Shown here: piece by piece, positions 3,578 to 22,193 of the stretch | Layout: each line of letters starts with the position of its first letter | Numbering within the stretch: position 1 is the first letter of the stretch | Sequence record: PV340856.1 | Reading direction: 5' to 3' (one strand) | Length of the DNA stretch: 64,000 nt | Program-made: the position numbers and the translations under genes | Notes under the pieces: generated by a model | Seen by the model: the letters and a program-made list of their open reading frames with translations, nothing else | Told to the model about the DNA's origin: nothing | Databases searched by the model: none

Positions 3578-5169
3578 TAGTAACCTACGTCGAAAAGTCC
3601 GATTGGAGTTAAATCGCCCAATCCCCCTAAAGAAGAATCTCTTTCTTCGGGAATATTTTGAGTATAATCAGTATTGTATATAGGTTCAAGTTCAGAAAAT
3701 CTGAATGTTAGAAATACTTTAACAGGGGCCCCTTGGTCATAGGCCATCCATTGTTCACCAGGAGCGTAGTTAACGGAAAAACTCGTTAATGCACATGGTT
3801 TAAATTTATTGACATGTTTATTCAAAGTACCACCTGTCAAATATTGTAATTGGAAAATGTTTGGTGTTCCCAAGAAGAACGAAGATCCTCCTGCTTGTGG
3901 TCCTTGATTTACGTCTTCTGTTCCAGTTAATTTTCTTGGAGCTGACCATTGTTTAAAACATCTAATCATTGTAGTGATAGCCTGAGTCTCTACATAACTT
4001 CTGGCAACTAAAGTGTAAGCAAACTCAAAAGTTCTCAGTGTCACACCCCTGAACATTAGTTCTGCGTTGCTGTTGGAGATGATTCCACCAGACCTTCCTA
4101 GAATTTGATCTGCACCAATATCAAATCCCAAATTTGCACCTAACATACTAACAATATTTGCTCCAAGTGCTCCTTTTATGGCACCATCGCCATTTGCTAT
4201 CATGGATCCATAAACTGCCAATTTAGCTGCTGAACCAACTAAATTTCCGAGTCCAAGTGGGTTTAATTTCTCGACCACTCCAGCGCTCCCATACTGAAAC
4301 GCATTTTTAGCAATATGTTGAGCTGCTCCTAATTGAATATCTCCCATATAGTCAACTTCCCATCCCGCAGAAGTTCCATCTACAATTGAATTGGGCATTG
4401 GAAGTTTGATAGATCCCAATCTTTCTTTGAATGGACTAGTTCTTTTGATATTTCCTATGCTTGTTTCTTGGAGAGCATCTGCATATGGAGGTTTGTATCT
4501 AAAACAAGTTATTTTCAGTGCATCCTGATTTGGGTTCATATTTTGTGGATATGTCAGGATATTACCAGGATACCCATTAAGAAGAGAAGCATCAAGATTA
4601 GTATCAAATTTGTTTCCTTGTAAACCATAATCTTTAACTAATCCAAATAAACCTTCAGATTGTATTGTTTTTAAAAAATTTTGACCCGATTGGAAAAAGT
4701 TTTCATCAGAGGAAACGTTTGTTCCTTGATTAGATCCACCAAATAAACCATCTATACCATCTATCGCACCCTGTATGCCACTTGCAGATCCAGTGGGTGT
4801 TTGTCCTGGTGCTATGGGTTCAAGAACATCACTTCCAGCAATTTGCGCCCAACTAGGTATGGTTTTATTGGATTGAATGGCTAATTGTTTCGTTGCAATT
4901 TGTATTTTTCTATGAAAATCTGCTTGTTGTTGTTCTGTGAGTGTGGTGACCTGACTCTTAGACCACTCGCCATTTCTGTATAGAGGCTTGGCATCTTTTA
5001 ATTGTCTGCCTTCATTATCAATTGGAAACGCTCTTACTTGTGTAATTTTTTTGGTTGATTTTCCACGTCTATCTAGTGCATATTCGGCTATAATCACATA
5101 TTCCCTTGTCACACCATCAACTACTTGGGTAACAGGAGGTTCAACTTTTATTTTGCTTCGTGATGCCAT
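3577..5169 (-). CDS. gp48: baseplate tail-tube cap gp48
   Basis: NSNAELMFRGVTLRTFEF, FKPCALTSFSVNYAP, FSELEPI; synteny 4-2-48-53. Confidence 0.85.
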   Translation of the reverse strand: MASRSKIKVEPPVTQVVDGVTREYVIIAEYALDRRGKSTKKITQVRAFPIDNEGRQLKDAKPLYRNGEWSKSQVTTLTEQQQADFHRKIQIATKQLAIQSNKTIPSWAQIAGSDVLEPIAPGQTPTGSASGIQGAIDGIDGLFGGSNQGTNVSSDENFFQSGQNFLKTIQSEGLFGLVKDYGLQGNKFDTNLDASLLNGYPGNILTYPQNMNPNQDALKITCFRYKPPYADALQETSIGNIKRTSPFKERLGSIKLPMPNSIVDGTSAGWEVDYMGDIQLGAAQHIAKNAFQYGSAGVVEKLNPLGLGNLVGSAAKLAVYGSMIANGDGAIKGALGANIVSMLGANLGFDIGADQILGRSGGIISNSNAELMFRGVTLRTFEFAYTLVARSYVETQAITTMIRCFKQWSAPRKLTGTEDVNQGPQAGGSSFFLGTPNIFQLQYLTGGTLNKHVNKFKPCALTSFSVNYAPGEQWMAYDQGAPVKVFLTFRFSELEPIYNTDYTQNIPEERDSSLGGLGDLTPIGLFDVGY

Positions 5170-5663
5170 TACTTACTCCAAGAATATGCTCTGTGTTTAG
5201 GATACTTCATACCTCGTTTATCAATAAACTTCTCTGTAGGTAGAAGAGCAATATCACCCCAGTTTTCATTCTTTGGAATTTTATATAAACTCCCAATACC
5301 AGAAAATAAGTATCTATGTATAGAGTTTTTCGGCACAGTAACACCGCCCTTGCTATTTATTAAGCTTTTTGCAACTGCGTCTCGATAGTCTGGATTTATA
5401 TAATGTAAGTTTGCTCCCAAAAAACCATCTGAATAAAATTGAATGACGTATGATAGTGGTTGAACATCCCAGAATTCATATTTTTCTGGAAATTTTGCAC
5501 CGTATTGAAAGAATATGAGGTCTCCAACAGCAACTCCCCCAGTATCACTTTCACTAATGTCTGGATCTTGCACGGCTGATAATGCTGATTCTAGTGCAGA
5601 AATGTACCAATCTCCACTCCTTCTTTTTTTACCAGCTTGTTCTATAATCGTTTGTGCAATCAT
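5169..5663 (-). CDS. gp2: DNA end protector gp2
   Basis: GDLIFFQYGAK...WDVQPL...GFLGANLHYI motif. Confidence 0.8.
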   Translation of the reverse strand: MIAQTIIEQAGKKRRSGDWYISALESALSAVQDPDISESDTGGVAVGDLIFFQYGAKFPEKYEFWDVQPLSYVIQFYSDGFLGANLHYINPDYRDAVAKSLINSKGGVTVPKNSIHRYLFSGIGSLYKIPKNENWGDIALLPTEKFIDKRGMKYPKHRAYSWSK

Positions 5664-6097
5664 ATCCCCAGATCGTCTTCAGTCATCACTCTGAATTCAT
5701 ATTTTCTATCCGCACAGTATTCTTCTGCAGCTTTCCATTTAGCCTGATTGATTACCCAGTTATGAACATCATGAGCCCAGGATTTGGTTCTCTTTTTTGG
5801 ATTTTTTTCTGGCATTTTCAGTTGTCGTTTTGGTTTCACTTCAATTACAACTGATCTTCTTTTGCCTTCTCTATCAATATACTTGATAAAAAAGTCTGGA
5901 AAATATCTATGAATTTTATTATCAATGGGAGATTTGTACGGAATGATAATCTCCTCGGATTGCCACTGATGAACACTTTCGTTTAGATCGCAATATCTCA
6001 TAAATTTTCTTTCCCACAAAGATCGATAAATGATGTTAGTGGGATCCCCTTTGTATTTTTTTGGGTACTCTGGTTTATATTTTCCTTTATAAGACAT
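5660..6097 (-). CDS. gp4: head completion nuclease gp4 (start moved to MSYKGKY at 6097)
   Basis: YKGKYKP..PKKYKGDPTNIIYRSLWERKFM, HRYFPDF, IEVKP. Confidence 0.93.
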   Translation of the reverse strand: MSYKGKYKPEYPKKYKGDPTNIIYRSLWERKFMRYCDLNESVHQWQSEEIIIPYKSPIDNKIHRYFPDFFIKYIDREGKRRSVVIEVKPKRQLKMPEKNPKKRTKSWAHDVHNWVINQAKWKAAEEYCADRKYEFRVMTEDDLGI

Positions 6098-6130: not shown

Positions 6131-7051
6131 ATGAGCTTCATACAACAACTTCAAGATATACTTGGTAGCTCAGCAAAAGTAAATACTAATGATGCTACAT
6201 TTGCGTCTAGACTTCAATCACCATCAACAACCAACACCTATAAAATATCTTTACTTTTAGCAAAAAACTTAGGCAATCCTTCCGCTGATTTGAGTTCTTG
6301 GTTGACTAGTGCTGGAGTGTTTGATCAGTCTGACCCAGATAGGTTTGATTTTCTGTGTTCCGAAACATTTATTCCTGGAACAAACATGACTCCATTTGAA
6401 ACTTTTGGAGATGTTCAGGGAATGTATGAGTCATTTAGTGGTCCCAGAAGAGACATGGAAATGGCATTTACATTCTATGTAGGATCAGATTATCAAACTC
6501 TTAGATTATTTGAGGAGTGGGTTAATTATATGAATCCAATTTATGCTCCAAATGAACTTACCAGTGCCAGTCCTGGTGGATATGAATCTCATCTAAATCA
6601 AAGTGTAATGTATAGATTTAGATATCCATCTACATATAAGAGAGATATTGCTATTACTAAATTTGAACGAGATTATAGAGATAATATAACATATGCATTT
6701 AAGTCTGCTTTTCCAACAAATATCGAAAGTATCCCCCTTACATATGATGCTGGACAACTTTTGAAGGTTACTGTTAGTATGAGATATGATAGAAAAGTAA
6801 TCATTCAATCTCGAAAACAGGTCGTTAACAATCAAACATCTGCAAATTCTTTCCCCTCATTGTTTGCTGGAGATGCAAAACCTGGTGGCGTCAATATAGA
6901 TGCGGGCACACTAGTTGGAGAATTCCAAAGTGGTCCAGATACACTGACTCAAAATTGGTTAGTTAATGGTCAACTTTTAACCAGTGATACTACTTTTGGA
7001 TCAACTATAGTTACTGGATTTGATGGTGCAGAAGTCGGTGATTTGACCTAA
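6131..7051 (+). CDS. gp54: baseplate tail-tube initiator, gp54/gp19-like
   Basis: FLCSETFIPG, FTFYVGSDY..LRLFEEW, AFPTNIESIPL tail-tube-family motifs; divergent from gp4. Confidence 0.65.
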   Translation: MSFIQQLQDILGSSAKVNTNDATFASRLQSPSTTNTYKISLLLAKNLGNPSADLSSWLTSAGVFDQSDPDRFDFLCSETFIPGTNMTPFETFGDVQGMYESFSGPRRDMEMAFTFYVGSDYQTLRLFEEWVNYMNPIYAPNELTSASPGGYESHLNQSVMYRFRYPSTYKRDIAITKFERDYRDNITYAFKSAFPTNIESIPLTYDAGQLLKVTVSMRYDRKVIIQSRKQVVNNQTSANSFPSLFAGDAKPGGVNIDAGTLVGEFQSGPDTLTQNWLVNGQLLTSDTTFGSTIVTGFDGAEVGDLT

Positions 7052-7081: not shown

Positions 7082-7804
7082 ATGCCTTTACCCAAAATTA
7101 CAACATCCCAATATGAGTTGGTGTTGCCTTCCACAGGCAAAACAATTAAGTATAGACCATTTCTTGTAAGAGAGGAAAAAATTCTAATCTTAGCTCTTGA
7201 AAGTGAAGATACTAAACAAATTACTAATGCTGTAAAACAAGTCTTAAAAGACTGTGTTATTTCTAGACTTAAGATTGAAGATCTTCCTAGTTTTGATATT
7301 GAATATTTGTTTCTGAATATTCGTGGAAAATCTGTAGGAGAGTCGGTAGATATCATTGTTACTTGTGGTGATGATGGAGAAACCCAAGTTCCTGTTTCCT
7401 TGCCCATTGACACCATCGAAGTCGATAGACATCCAGACCACACTCAAGATTTGGAGCTTGGAGAGGGGTATGTATTGAGAATGAAATATCCTACCATGGG
7501 ACAATTCATTGATACAAACTTCAATGTTAAGTCTACGGAAGAGGATGAAGTAGAAAGATCATTCAATATTATCTGTTCATGTATTGAACAGGTTTATAAT
7601 GAAGAAGATATGTGGTCTGCTTCTGAGTGTTCAAAGAAAGAACTAAGAGATTGGGTAGAAAGTTTAACCTCCGAACAATTTAAGAAAATTGAAAAGTTCT
7701 TTGAAACAATGCCCAAACTTCGTCATGAAATTAAAGTAATAAATCCCAAAACCAAGAAAGAAAATACTGTCGTTTTGGAGGGTTTATCGAGTTTTTTCGC
7801 TTAA
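7082..7804 (+). CDS. gp26: baseplate hub subunit gp26
   Basis: MPLPKI..PQYELVLPSTGKTIKYRPFLVREEKIL, FDIEYLFLNIRGKSVGE, LEGLSSFF. Confidence 0.93.
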   Translation: MPLPKITTSQYELVLPSTGKTIKYRPFLVREEKILILALESEDTKQITNAVKQVLKDCVISRLKIEDLPSFDIEYLFLNIRGKSVGESVDIIVTCGDDGETQVPVSLPIDTIEVDRHPDHTQDLELGEGYVLRMKYPTMGQFIDTNFNVKSTEEDEVERSFNIICSCIEQVYNEEDMWSASECSKKELRDWVESLTSEQFKKIEKFFETMPKLRHEIKVINPKTKKENTVVLEGLSSFFA

Positions 7805-19029: not shown

Positions 19030-19683
19030 ATGATACATATTGACTGTTCTAGAGAACCTCTAGATTTTTCACAATACGATCTGGCACAAGATGAGATCTT
19101 TGTGATCGATAATCTATTTCCATGGTGGTTTGTTCATCACATAGACAAAACAATCCTGCATGGATTTGGATGGCAATATGGTCTCTGTAGTGGTCATAAA
19201 AGTAAATCAGATGGTACTCCAGATTGGGATTATGATAAGGGTGCCGATTTCGACTTTGAAGTTCCTTGTTTCAAACAATCAATTTATCCACCTAGATCAG
19301 AATCTGCAAGTGACAGTGCCTACGGAATGTTGTATAATGCAGTGGTAGGTTCTATTGATTTCGATTTAGAACTGGGAGAAATCCTAGTAAATGGACAACA
19401 ATATATCCATAACACTACTATTCATCAGGATTGTAGTTGTGACAATGGATTAAGCTGGATTTATTATGTAAATAAAAGATGGGAACCAGAATGGGGTGGT
19501 CCAACTATCATTGAACATAATGGAGAAACAGTAGAAGTTTTACCAAAACCAGGAAGAGTATGTTTCTTCAAAGGTAATATTCCACATAGAGGTGCTCCTC
19601 CCAATGGAGAATATTACCGAGGACTTAGAGCAACTCTAGTATATAAAACTATGAGAAAGGATCCCCTACCTACTAGACAATGA
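19030..19683 (+). CDS. 2OG-Fe(II) oxygenase
   Basis: IHQD...WEPEWGG...PKPGRVCFFKGNIPHRG...RATLV. Confidence 0.85.
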   Translation: MIHIDCSREPLDFSQYDLAQDEIFVIDNLFPWWFVHHIDKTILHGFGWQYGLCSGHKSKSDGTPDWDYDKGADFDFEVPCFKQSIYPPRSESASDSAYGMLYNAVVGSIDFDLELGEILVNGQQYIHNTTIHQDCSCDNGLSWIYYVNKRWEPEWGGPTIIEHNGETVEVLPKPGRVCFFKGNIPHRGAPPNGEYYRGLRATLVYKTMRKDPLPTRQ

Positions 19684-20210
19684 AGAAAGAAATCTTTGCT
19701 ATTCCAATCTTTGAAGACACTATTGATTTAGAACTATTCAAAGTTCCTCCATGTAAAGATGGAGAAATTATAGAAACTTGGGATTCAAAAGTTCCAACGT
19801 CGTTTAATTCTAAACTAGATATTAGTGAAGATGCTATGCAGCATCTAGTCAATGTCATTGAGAGAAATCTTGGTCCTGAGGGTTTAATTGCTATGAATCC
19901 TCGCATTGAACATATTTGGAGGAATGTATATAAGGAGAATGATTATCAGGATCCACATATTCATCCAGTATGCCAATGGAGTTTTATCATTTATGAAACT
20001 GTCAGATCCAAAACATCATTCTTAAATCCCTCATTGGGCATCGTTCAAGAAAAGTATGGTATGAATTGCCGTGCTTTTCCACCAGACTATAAACCAGATC
20101 TGGAACCAGGAAGTATTATTATCTTCCCGTCAATGTTGCTTCATTTCGTAAATAGTGGTAATATTGGCAGTACAATCTCAGGAAACATCTACATGGATTA
20201 TGGAGGATAA
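19680..20210 (+). CDS. 2OG-Fe(II) oxygenase (TIGR02466-like)
   Basis: WRNVY...QDPHIH, IIFPSMLLHFV, TISGNI. Confidence 0.8.
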   Translation: MKKEIFAIPIFEDTIDLELFKVPPCKDGEIIETWDSKVPTSFNSKLDISEDAMQHLVNVIERNLGPEGLIAMNPRIEHIWRNVYKENDYQDPHIHPVCQWSFIIYETVRSKTSFLNPSLGIVQEKYGMNCRAFPPDYKPDLEPGSIIIFPSMLLHFVNSGNIGSTISGNIYMDYGG

Positions 20211-20211
20211 C

Positions 20212-20427
20212 ATGGAAGAAGAAAAAGTAATTAGAAGTGAACCTAATGCCAAGTATGGCAATGAACTCCTACTAGACAATATTGATTATATTGGTCAAGC
20301 AGTGGGTGATATCATTACCAGACTCAAGAGGCTAGAACAACGGATGGATGCCGTTGAAGTTGATGCAAGATCAGCTAACTTCCAAATCAACAGAGTTTTA
20401 GATTACACTATTGGAGATGGAAAATGA
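20212..20427 (+). CDS. small hypothetical protein
   Basis: ATG at 20212 preceded by GGAGG; 71 aa. Confidence 0.55.
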   Translation: MEEEKVIRSEPNAKYGNELLLDNIDYIGQAVGDIITRLKRLEQRMDAVEVDARSANFQINRVLDYTIGDGK

Positions 20428-20562
20428 CTACAAAAACTTTCAAAAATTGACAAAAAAGGTCATGAAGAAATTTGGGAGTGGGAAGAAACTCCCGAACTTC
20501 GAGCATTCATCAAGAATCAGTCAACTTCAAAACTGTCCGCTCCTCCTACAAGACCCCAATAA
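20424..20562 (+). pseudogene. small ORF apparently split by a 1-nt frameshift (or sequencing error)
   Basis: MTTKTFKN* stops at 20448-20450; the adjacent frame continues IDKKGHEEIWEWEETPELRAF...* across an A5 run. Confidence 0.4.
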
Positions 20563-20564
20563 TA

Positions 20565-20573
20565 TGGTATAAT
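20565..20573 (+). promoter_or_regulatory. extended -10 promoter for the tRNA/tmRNA operon
   Basis: TG-G-TATAAT ending 8 nt before the first tRNA. Confidence 0.55.
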
Positions 20574-20581
20574 AACATAGT

Positions 20582-20654
20582 GCTTCCTTAGCAATCTGGT
20601 GAATGCTCCGAACTCATAATTCGGTTAAGGAGAGTTCGATCCTCTCAGGAAGCA
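20582..20654 (+). tRNA. tRNA with CAU anticodon (Ile2/lysidine-type or Met)
   Basis: Acceptor GCTTCCT/AGGAAGC, anticodon arm CCGAA-CTCATAA-TTCGG, T-loop GTTCGATC. Confidence 0.85.
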
Positions 20655-20659
20655 CTTAT

Positions 20660-20745
20660 GCGAGTATGGCGGAATCGGTAGACGCACCAGACTTAAAATC
20701 TGTTGACTATATAAGGTCGTGGGAGTTCAAGTCTCCCTACTCGCA
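20660..20745 (+). tRNA. trnL: tRNA-Leu(UAA)
   Basis: GCGAGTA/TACTCGC acceptor, CT-TAA-AA loop, long variable arm, GTTCAAGTC. Confidence 0.95.
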
Positions 20746-20749
20746 CCTT

Positions 20750-20821
20750 GCCCTTGTAGCTCAGTGGTAGAGCAGCGCTTTTGTAAAGCGAAGGTCATCG
20801 GTTCAAATCCGTTCGAGGGCT
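20750..20821 (+). tRNA. trnT: tRNA-Thr(UGU)
   Basis: GCCCTTG/CGAGGGC acceptor, CGCTT-TTTGTAA-AGCG anticodon arm, GGTTCAAATCC. Confidence 0.95.
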
Positions 20822-21100
20822 TTCACTCTTTTGAGTGAATAGGTTGCACCATCGACATTTCGGACAGGAGTTCGATTCTCCTCGCTTCCACTCATGGGGG
20901 CGCAATGGTTTCGACGGGGTATACGGAGTGTGACTGAAACCTGCTTGGATAAGCAACCAATAGATGCAAAAACATCTGATGTCGCTGCGAACAATATCGT
21001 AGCATTCTCCCGCACTCGCGAACTCGCGACTGCCTGAATGGGAGATCGGGGTTAGACTAGCCTTGTTACCCAAGTAGTCCGTGGGGGTGTAATGCCCCCT
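20822..21100 (+). ncRNA. ssrA: circularly permuted two-piece tmRNA (acceptor piece about 20822-20890, intervening 20891-20895, coding piece 20896 to about 21100)
   Basis: T-arm AGGAG-TTCGATT-CTCCT plus 3' strand CGCTTCC-A comes before the 5' strand GGGGGCG-CAATGGTTTCGAC; G3-U70 pair; P2 pairing AGTGTGACT with GGTTGCACC; tag ORF 20987-21037 ANNIVAFSRTRELATA*. Confidence 0.9.
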
Positions 21101-21115
21101 TCATTCAGGAGTGTT

Positions 21116-21301
21116 ATGAAAATCAACTTATGGTATTCTAAGAGTATGTCGCAATGGCGATGGACTCTTACCGAAGAGTTTAGGAATGGAGTTACTAAAC
21201 TAGAACAACATTCTGGTCAACATCCATTTCTTAGAGATGCTATGAATGATGTAGCAAACACGGTTGAATACCTTTTGGATGAGCACACCAATCCCAAGTA
21301 G
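21116..21301 (+). CDS. conserved small cyanophage protein; stop codon lies inside tRNA-Asn
   Basis: MKINLWYSKSMSQWRWTL...; CAGGAG RBS; TAG at 21299-21301. Confidence 0.7.
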   Translation: MKINLWYSKSMSQWRWTLTEEFRNGVTKLEQHSGQHPFLRDAMNDVANTVEYLLDEHTNPK

Positions 21302-21363
21302 CTCAGTGGCAGAGCCGCCGACTGTTAATCGGCTGGTCGCTGGTTCAAATCCAGCCTTGGGAG
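21292..21363 (+). tRNA. trnN: tRNA-Asn(GUU)
   Basis: TCCCAAG/CTTGGGA acceptor, GCCGA-CTGTTAA-TCGGC, GGTTCAAATCC. Confidence 0.95.
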
Positions 21364-21366
21364 TAA

Positions 21367-21439
21367 GGGGAATTAGCTCAGTTGGTAGAGCGCCTGCTTT
21401 GCAAGCAGGATGTCAGCGGTTCGAGTCCGCTATTCTCCA
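21367..21439 (+). tRNA. trnA: tRNA-Ala(UGC)
   Basis: GGGGAAT/ATTCTCC with G3-U70, CCTGC-TTTGCAA-GCAGG, GGTTCGAGTCC. Confidence 0.95.
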
Positions 21440-21464
21440 TATATAATAGGAATTGGATAAGTAT

Positions 21465-22193
21465 ATGTTTGAATTAAGTGAGTCGATGGAGGTCGCTCAA
21501 ATTGATAACATCGGACCAAATGCTGTTACTTGTGTTGTTATCGATAACCTCTATGCAAATCCAGATGAAGTTAGAAGATTTGCATTAAAACATAGGGGTG
21601 AAGCAGAGAAGATTAATGAATATTGTGACTTTGGTGATCGGTTAGCAATTAAACACAAGGATATCCGCAATATAAAAGAAGTTGTTGATGATTTTGTTAG
21701 GAACCGTGCTATCTGGAATAACTGGTATGACGAGTTATCATATGAAACTAACTGGCATGATGCCGAGTTTCTAGTAAATTTCACTAGTCACCAAACTTTA
21801 GTTAATAATCCATTTGGATTAATTCCACATCAAGACACATATCTAAGATTTCAACTCCCAAGTAGATTTGGAGTTGTAATCTATTTAAATACTCCTGAGG
21901 AGTGTGAGGGAGGCACAAACTTTTATAGTTACCTTGGCAAACAAGGACTCGAAAGATCTTTATTGTATGAGAAACAATTTAAAGATATTACGAGTGCCGA
22001 TAACAAATGTACTGAGACATATGAAGAGTTATTCAATACAATTCAAATGTCCTCTGCACTGAAAATTGAAGCAGAGATTGGAATGAGATATAATAGAATG
22101 CTCATTTATCCTGTAGATATTCTTCACGCACCAAGTATGGCTCCTGGATGGTTTAAAAATCATGAAAGAATTGCACAAGTAATGTTCTTATGA
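21465..22193 (+). CDS. 2OG-Fe(II) oxygenase-like protein (DUF6445-like)
   Basis: VVIDNLYANPDEVR.FA, PHQD, YLNTPEECEGGTNFY, YNRMLIY...LH...RIAQVMF. Confidence 0.75.
   Translation: MFELSESMEVAQIDNIGPNAVTCVVIDNLYANPDEVRRFALKHRGEAEKINEYCDFGDRLAIKHKDIRNIKEVVDDFVRNRAIWNNWYDELSYETNWHDAEFLVNFTSHQTLVNNPFGLIPHQDTYLRFQLPSRFGVVIYLNTPEECEGGTNFYSYLGKQGLERSLLYEKQFKDITSADNKCTETYEELFNTIQMSSALKIEAEIGMRYNRMLIYPVDILHAPSMAPGWFKNHERIAQVMFL

Follow-up and report, generated by a model that had tools for sequence, protein, structure and literature searches.

A circularly permuted two-piece tmRNA gene of a phage lineage in the tRNA array of Synechococcus phage Sf-FS3

What lies in the gap that follows tRNA-Thr in the tRNA array of Synechococcus phage Sf-FS3, and what would it do for the phage? 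We analysed a 64,000-nucleotide (nt) stretch of DNA (the window), which is identical (100%) to the Sf-FS3 record PV340856.1 (216,248 bp) and shares its coordinates. Sf-FS3 is a T4-like cyanomyovirus that was isolated on Synechococcus WH8102 from sponge cells (PMC12284385). Its GenBank record leaves the interval from the end of tRNA-Thr (20821) to the start of the coding sequence (CDS) SfFS3_24 (21092) unannotated, and the paper on the phage, which counted 10 tRNAs with tRNAscan-SE, never mentions a transfer-messenger RNA (tmRNA) (PMC12284385). A first-pass annotation of the window had called in this interval a phage-borne permuted tmRNA of the marine picocyanobacterial type with the acceptor piece first, and had proposed covariance-model and BLASTn searches as checks. 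The silence of both record and paper agrees with its expectation that annotation aimed at tRNAs would miss such a gene.

The interval indeed holds a complete circularly permuted, two-piece tmRNA gene of the marine picocyanobacterial type, acceptor piece first, at 20822-21099 on the plus strand. The Rfam model cyano_tmRNA (RF01851) matches the window at 20809-21098 with 143.3 bits (E 4.7e-39; gathering score 70), and the match runs end to end, over model positions 1-288 of 288. The model tmRNA_permuted (RF04321) is likewise covered in full (positions 1-213 of 213) at 82.7 bits against a gathering score of 47, and ARAGORN independently places a permuted tmRNA at 20801-21128. The order of the parts is permuted, with the T-arm (20866-20882) and the acceptor 3' strand (20883-20889) upstream of the acceptor 5' strand (20896-20902) and the tag reading frame (20987-21037). 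This gene form and its two-piece product are known from marine picocyanobacteria (Gaudin et al., 2002, as summarised in PMC1242208), and Axmann et al. (2005, PMC1242208) demonstrated maturation into two pieces on northern blots for Prochlorococcus strains and for Synechococcus WH8102. The call is further supported by covariation among 25 phage homologues. Judged by its sequence and that of its relatives, the Sf-FS3 gene is real and structurally intact, and it is probably functional.

Other readings of the same stretch were set aside. A second ARAGORN call, a one-piece tmRNA at 20474-20891, is spurious, as it engulfs tRNA-Met, tRNA-Leu and tRNA-Thr and takes its T-arm and acceptor strand from the genuine gene. 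A tmRNA consisting of the tRNA-like domain only, of the type found in phage DS6A, is excluded by the full mRNA-like domain and the open tag frame. An ssrA fragment serving as a phage attachment site would be a 3' part near-identical to the host gene; the gene is complete and diverged from those of hosts.

Mapping the Rfam structure onto the Sf-FS3 sequence resolves the anatomy of the two pieces, and a direct reading of the sequence finds every element that the first-pass annotation had listed at, or within one base of, the place it gave. The acceptor piece (20822-20890, delimited by sequence, Rfam and the mapped structure) is 69 nt long before CCA addition. It opens directly after tRNA-Thr with a 5' hairpin (TTCACTC-TTTT-GAGTGAA, 20822-20839) and continues through one strand of the P2 helix (20842-20862), the T-arm (AGGAG-TTCGATT-CTCCT) and the acceptor 3' strand (CGCTTCC), next to which stands the discriminator A at 20890. 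A 5-nt linker, CTCAT (20891-20895), which would be removed during maturation, separates it from the coding piece (20896-21099), whose limits are supported by Rfam, the mapped structure and covariation. The coding piece starts with the acceptor 5' strand GGGGGCG, followed by the D-loop-like AATGGTTTCGAC (20904-20915) and the second P2 strand (20915-20935). Two small hairpins (20942-20955 and 20962-20977) precede the tag; a hairpin at the tag end (21013-21032), a further helix (21041-21071) and a terminal hairpin (21083-21099) follow in the mapped structure. All of these elements lie on the plus strand.

Pairing between the two pieces places G3 (G20898) opposite U70 (T20887), so that the G3-U70 alanine identity element of the first-pass annotation is present, and the P2-like helix that it had noticed is longer than it described, with 20842-20862 pairing with 20915-20935 in a bulged helix. 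Upstream of the tag, the Rfam alignment offers a weak hairpin (TGCTT...AAACA) with a 21-nt insertion; we replaced it with the hairpins at 20942-20955 and 20962-20977, both of which are backed by compensatory change among the homologues. When the two pieces are co-folded thermodynamically, the intermolecular acceptor stem, T-arm and hairpins all form. No CCA is encoded in Sf-FS3, nor in any of the 30 phage and 108 host copies among the matches listed. Linkers in these copies measure 4-9 nt in phages and 5-23 nt in hosts, and the linker is so short that cutting would be needed to expose a chargeable 3' end.

The structure is borne out by covariation, which we counted, pair by pair of the mapped structure, in 25 distinct aligned phage copies. 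Paired positions can form pairs in 86% of cells, against 43-54% when the partners are slid by 1-3 columns. Changes on both sides occur in 36 of 70 pairs, a count reached by none of 500 shuffles, while the slid controls give 10-22. Pairing in the T-arm and acceptor stem is complete (100%) in each of the 25 sequences, with compensatory changes; acceptor pair 5-68, for example, is seen as G-C, A-U, C-G and U-A. The hairpin just upstream of the tag changes from AGATG/CATCT to ATCTG/CAGAT in several phage copies. G3-U70 is invariant in 25/25 phage homologues, and the discriminator A is present in 30/30 phage and 108/108 host copies among the matches listed. Sequence and covariation thus show the two pieces joined by a 7-bp acceptor stem and a long P2 helix, with the alanine identity elements G3-U70 and A73 in the acceptor stem.

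The tag frame (20987-21037, plus strand, GCG...TGA) encodes ANNIVAFSRTRELATA followed by a stop, exactly the tag open reading frame (ORF) read in the first-pass annotation, and the Rfam alignment to host genes agrees. ARAGORN sets the tag start further upstream (AKTSDVAANNIV...); this longer tag was not adopted, since the alignment to host genes puts the resume codon at 20987. The preceding triplet, GCT (Ala) at 20984-20986, could nevertheless be the true resume codon. Among the matches listed, the triplet before the resume codon encodes alanine (GCN) in 26/30 phage copies versus 0/108 host copies, and the phage tag may start one alanine earlier than read here. Degenerate frames, which the first-pass annotation had named as evidence against its reading if seen in related phages, do not occur: the tag is open in 30/30 phage copies among the matches listed, and its length differences (14-24 amino acids) are always whole codons. 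In the first nine codons of these tags, codon positions 1, 2 and 3 have 2, 2 and 8 variable sites, a third-position pattern as expected of a sequence that is translated. Together with the covariation, this argues that the cyanophage tmRNAs are under selection for both structure and tag coding.

Host and phage tags differ in how far they vary. All 108 host tags among the matches listed are 16 amino acids long and end in AA, in only 10 variants, reading ANNIVRFSRQ(A/T)APVAA in Synechococcus and ANKIVSFSRQTAPVAA in Prochlorococcus. The 30 phage copies listed carry 18 different tags, in which the N-terminal ANNIVAFSR is kept and the rest is rewritten, as in TRELATA (Sf-FS3 and the IMG/VR contig L070, whose tag peptide is identical), TREFATA, IAELATV, STVAA and ILTREFARTDELVTA (S-SSM7). 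Many end in ATA, ATV, VTA, VPA, VAV or TLV, and many have added charged residues (R, E, D). In Sf-FS3 itself, the first nine residues agree with host tags at eight positions, and the C-terminal seven differ.

To what lineage does the gene belong? With blastn, 18 of 50,697 phage records show a homologue, and these represent six named phages (Sf-FS3, S-SSM7/S-SSM6a, S-CAM1, S-CAM3, S-CRM01 and AG-345-P14), and those phage homologues that were tested score 109-128 bits with cyano_tmRNA. A wider set, assembled from one pattern scan each of IMG/VR and GTDB genomes together with an nhmmer search, holds at least 30 distinct copies from phages or viral contigs and at least 108 host copies from Synechococcus and Prochlorococcus. 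In a neighbour-joining tree of the matches listed, the 108 host genes form one clade and 30/30 phage copies fall outside it, with Sf-FS3 placed within a clade of 20 phage-only sequences and adjoining L070. L070 is also the best phage match among those listed, at 88% identity over the tmRNA proper, whereas identity to the hosts listed is 59-73% (best 73%, median 65%). The placement is accompanied by conserved synteny in S-SSM7, where 2OG oxygenase genes, the tmRNA, a small ORF, a DUF6445/minor coat gene and a tail fibre gene occur as in Sf-FS3. We rejected a recent copy of a Synechococcus or Prochlorococcus ssrA gene, given the position outside the host clade, the identity of at most 73% among the matches listed and the different tag. 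These comparisons indicate that the tmRNA has been kept for a long time in a phage-only lineage and is not a stray host gene. The description of the RNA as host-style in the first-pass annotation therefore holds for its permuted cyanobacterial form, and does not hold for its phage-only lineage, the altered C-terminal half of its tag or its tRNA-array context.

That context is itself a shared phage feature. Among the matches listed, a junction of tRNA-Thr(UGU) with the tmRNA occurs at 13/30 phage loci (including L070, L030, L062, L076, L117, L026 and L023) versus 0/108 host loci, and in phage loci a second tRNA often begins right after the tmRNA 3' hairpin. No host gene listed (0/108) has a tRNA within 120 nt upstream of the T-loop or 150-400 nt downstream. 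The tmRNA thus looks like a fixed member of phage tRNA arrays. S-CAM1, S-CAM3 and AG-345-P14 have no upstream tRNA-Thr; a TACTAT-like box stands in its place, which suggests a promoter of their own.

We further note two loci at which tmRNA sequence occurs more than once. The viral contig L012 (IMGVR_UViG_3300020204_000938), where 10.5 kb contain 22 tRNA genes, has two copies, at 5590-5694 and 6316-6616: a full permuted tmRNA and, about 700 nt upstream of it, a truncated copy that consists of the tRNA-like domain alone and runs into a tRNA-like T-arm. The GTDB host locus L239 gives two nhmmer profile hits about 3 kb apart (4255-4578 and 7527-7768); ARAGORN calls only the first as a tmRNA, and the second may be a partial or diverged copy.

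What would such a gene do during infection? In the reading that we consider likely, 20822-21099 is a functional ssrA gene of a phage lineage whose two-piece product rescues stalled ribosomes by means of host factors. The tmRNA would be transcribed together with the flanking tRNAs and excised by host tRNA-processing enzymes. Because the 3' end of tRNA-Thr abuts the tmRNA, maturation of that end would also define where the acceptor piece begins; a cut by RNase P before G20896 would free the coding piece, the trailer CTCAT would be trimmed to A20890, and the host CCA-adding enzyme would append CCA. Host alanyl-tRNA synthetase (AlaRS) would then charge the molecule with alanine, and host SmpB and EF-Tu would carry it to ribosomes stalled on broken mRNAs. 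Translation would resume at GCG 20987 (or GCT 20984), adding (A)ANNIVAFSRTRELATA, and the ribosomes so freed would serve phage protein synthesis while host mRNA is degraded. With a host-like N-terminal half and a phage-specific C-terminal half, the tag may give its proteins a fate different from that conferred by the host tag. A tblastn search with SmpB of E. coli K-12 (NC_000913.3) matches 68 phage records, none of them from a cyanophage, and finds nothing in the window or in the loci fetched for comparison, so the use of host SmpB would follow, and reliance on host AlaRS, EF-Tu, RNase P and the CCA-adding enzyme is presumed alongside it. We infer a role in freeing ribosomes that mRNA decay or anti-phage RNases have stalled.

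Several points weigh against this account of a working rescue RNA or limit it. The gene is rare among isolates (18/50,697 records), so most cyanomyoviruses can do without it. The tree was built by plain neighbour joining and has no support values, and its host set of at least 108 copies comes from a single exact-pattern scan and is biased by the pattern. The P2 helix is absent from the thermodynamic co-fold of the two pieces, and because co-folding misses it, this helix rests on comparative evidence. An extended -10-like box, TGGTATAAT (20565-20573, plus strand), lies 8 nt upstream of the first tRNA and is a possible, weak candidate for a promoter of the tRNA/tmRNA cluster, but the 7 copies of this motif in the window are no significant excess over the 4.6 expected. 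The TGNTATAAT motif is not enriched in the window either, a two-hexamer promoter scan of 20100-21700 returned nothing, and promoter and terminator scans around the locus gave nothing useful. With no convincing promoter found, co-transcription with the tRNAs is a presumption. Every step after transcription is modelled on the host system. Finally, the Sf-FS3 tag ends in ATA and not in the AA that is invariant in the 108 host tags listed, and its value as a degradation signal is uncertain.

How do other explanations fare against the same evidence? The gene might be a passenger, a host ssrA gained by recombination and without function, or a remnant of an attachment site of the temperate-phage type. 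Cyanomyoviruses often carry host-derived genes in this hypervariable region, the gene is found in few isolates, and prophage ssrA fragments are known (PMC9004378). Yet this gene is complete and not a 3' fragment, its identity to hosts is 59-73% and it groups with phages only (among the matches listed), compensatory changes and open tag frames persist through the phage lineage, and both the tRNA-Thr linkage and the S-SSM7 synteny are conserved. The tree, the covariation and the tag frames largely refute the passenger reading, which we regard as highly improbable. It is also very unlikely that the RNA is a decoy, sequestering host SmpB or obstructing trans-translation by the host without tagging, as has been proposed for the DS6A molecule, although there is precedent in that tRNA-like-domain molecule and in cited work in which a similar molecule strongly inhibits tmRNA (Hudson et al., 2014, PMC4131195), and the contig L012 has a truncated copy of this kind beside its full one. 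A pure decoy would need neither the full mRNA-like domain of Sf-FS3 nor an open, conserved tag frame with mostly third-position variation. Nor does a protein-coding gene, which has a negligible chance of being the right answer, account for the data. An ATG ORF of 47 amino acids (20894-21037) does run in the tag frame in Sf-FS3, and other phage records annotate a hypothetical protein over the homologous stretch, as in S-SSM7 (SSSM7_025) and S-CAM3 (gp053). Upstream of the tag, however, insertions and deletions among the homologues do not come in multiples of three and substitutions are compensatory changes within pairs rather than third-position changes, and the covariance-model scores are decisive.

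A different question arises if the tmRNA works, namely whether it was selected mainly to alter the fate of tagged proteins and not just to add rescue capacity. Here the phage tag end would act as a weaker or different degradation signal, and the rescued chains would not burden the host Clp proteases or would take another route. Recognition by ClpXP in E. coli depends on the final tag residues, and protein half-life changes when these are altered. Among the matches listed, the fixed host tags (16 amino acids, 108/108 ending in AA, 10 variants) stand against 18 tags in 30 phage copies, with lengths of 14-24 amino acids, many ends other than AA and charged additions; the N-terminal ANNIVAFSR is retained, and the extra alanine codon before the resume codon is found in 26/30 phage copies versus 0/108 host copies. 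Some phage copies nevertheless retain host-like ends (QAAPVAA, STVAA), so that the changed end is not universal, and the variable part of the tag also forms the hairpin 21013-21032, such that its change may reflect RNA structure or relaxed constraint. We hold selection for altered fate to be possible but doubtful. Equally tentative is a fuller version, in which cyanomyoviruses keep an old two-piece tmRNA lineage whose ends are set by neighbouring tRNAs, most often tRNA-Thr(UGU), and whose tag has been re-engineered: the N-terminal half that faces the ribosome or adaptors would be kept and the invariant C-terminal degradation signal of the host replaced, so that rescue would proceed without the normal host Clp route or through another.

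The surroundings of the tmRNA are those of a tRNA array on the plus strand. Upstream lie a tRNA with a CAU anticodon (20582-20654; Met according to ARAGORN, Ile2 in the GenBank record), tRNA-Leu(UAA) (20660-20745; ARAGORN, Rfam and the GenBank record) and tRNA-Thr(UGU) (20750-20821; ARAGORN), whose 3' end abuts the tmRNA 5' hairpin. Downstream, tRNA-Asn(GUU) (21292-21363) and tRNA-Ala(UGC) (21367-21439) are found by both ARAGORN and Rfam. Between the tmRNA and tRNA-Asn lies a small, conserved phage ORF of 61 amino acids (21116-21301, plus strand; phrog_2818, function not assigned), the last 10 bases of which overlap tRNA-Asn. This is SfFS3_24, whose annotated start at 21092 falls within the tmRNA terminal hairpin; the ATG at 21116, with AGGAG ahead of it at 21108-21112, is more likely to be the true start. 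Its product is 35% identical to S-SSM7 SSSM7_026, which likewise follows the S-SSM7 tmRNA. Several genes of the 2OG-Fe(II) oxygenase type flank the cluster (19030-20210 and 21465-22193), of which one carries a prolyl 4-hydroxylase-like and another a JmjC annotation, while a third is a DUF6445 gene with a weak 2OG match. In S-CAM1 (locus L003), a wcaG RNA motif (RF01761, 83.5 bits) lies at 5066-5162, about 2.3 kb downstream of the tmRNA.

These findings bear on annotation first. None of the 18 homologue-bearing phage records annotates a tmRNA, and several have a 'hypothetical protein' CDS over the RNA. SSSM7_025 (L002, 2494-2712), BOW87_gp053 of S-CAM3 (L004, 2455-2595) and the CDSs in the S-CAM1 KU6861xx records are almost certainly misannotations, and the annotation is hereby corrected for S-SSM7, S-CAM1 and S-CAM3 as well as for Sf-FS3. 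Beyond annotation, the few cyanophage tmRNAs are better seen as a conserved phage lineage, selected for structure and tag coding, than as stray host genes. From the contrast between a fixed host tag and a rewritten phage tag, and from the placement in tRNA arrays that only phage copies show, comes a testable question: do marine phages gain only more rescue while host mRNA is broken down, or an altered fate for rescued proteins as well? In the literature searched, we found no experimental work that sets a boost in rescue against altered protein fate. If the re-engineered-tag reading were true, it would amount to viral reprogramming of bacterial translation quality control, beyond topping up a host RNA.

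Permuted tmRNAs of cyanophages are, as a kind, already catalogued. Knowledge of phage tmRNAs goes back to the mycobacteriophage examples (PMC4131195), and a 2025 tmRNA database lists 79 unique sequences from bacteriophages (PMC11915505). In a survey of 18,146 phage genomes, Buchholz et al. (2022) reported 53 permuted tmRNAs, 50 of them from marine or aquatic phages, with S-SSM7, S-SSM6a, S-CAM1, S-CAM3, S-CRM01, S-CBWM1 and AG-345-P14 named in their supplementary table (PMC9004378). Sf-FS3, a 2025 genome, lies outside that survey, and its gene is a new, unannotated member of the kind. In the literature searched, we found no paper that analyses the cyanophage tmRNA copies themselves; that these copies form a lineage confined to phages, have a rewritten tag end and are embedded in tRNA arrays seems not to have been reported before, and these features extend the catalogued phenomenon rather than amounting to a system of a new kind.

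The closest relatives are the tmRNAs of S-SSM7/S-SSM6a, S-CAM1, S-CAM3, S-CRM01 and AG-345-P14, homologues of the Sf-FS3 gene at 70-75% blastn identity and members of the same phage-only lineage; the S-SSM7 gene is also syntenic in position. The Sf-FS3 tag, with its TRELATA end, is unlike those of the named isolates and is shared, among the matches listed, only with the uncultured contig L070. Buchholz et al. (2022) assign a glutamine riboswitch to AG-345-P14 (PMC9004378), whereas at the Rfam gathering threshold we find none in the Sf-FS3 window, nor within 2.5 kb of the AG-345-P14 tmRNA. With the host tmRNA of marine Synechococcus and Prochlorococcus (RF01851), Sf-FS3 shares the acceptor-first order, the helices over 288 model positions, G3-U70, A73, the lack of an encoded CCA, AATGGTTTCGAC and a tag that starts as ANNIV.FSR. 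It differs from the host RNA in its tag end (TRELATA against the host Q(A/T)APVAA), its extra alanine codon and a longer two-hairpin region before the tag, at the 21-nt insertion in the Rfam alignment, and in its position between tRNA genes, which none of the 108 host genes among the matches listed has as neighbours.

Similar solutions are found in more distant phages. The OM43 phage Melnitz and the pelagimyophages (Buchholz et al., 2022, PMC9004378) are, like Sf-FS3, lytic marine T4-like phages with a complete permuted ssrA and no smpB, and the role suggested for the Melnitz RNA, to keep the hijacked translation machinery working or to tag proteins (PMC9004378), is the one proposed here. The Melnitz tmRNA belongs to the alphaproteobacterial type and has a linked glutamine riboswitch, whereas Sf-FS3 has a cyanobacterial-type tmRNA within a tRNA array. 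Mycobacteriophages of the Bxz1 group, Bacillus phage G and DS6A likewise carry an ssrA of their own that depends on host SmpB (PMC4131195), as we suppose for Sf-FS3. The tmRNAs of the Bxz1 group and of phage G, however, are standard one-piece molecules and not permuted, and that of DS6A is without a tag, whereas Sf-FS3 combines the permuted two-piece form with a full tag frame.

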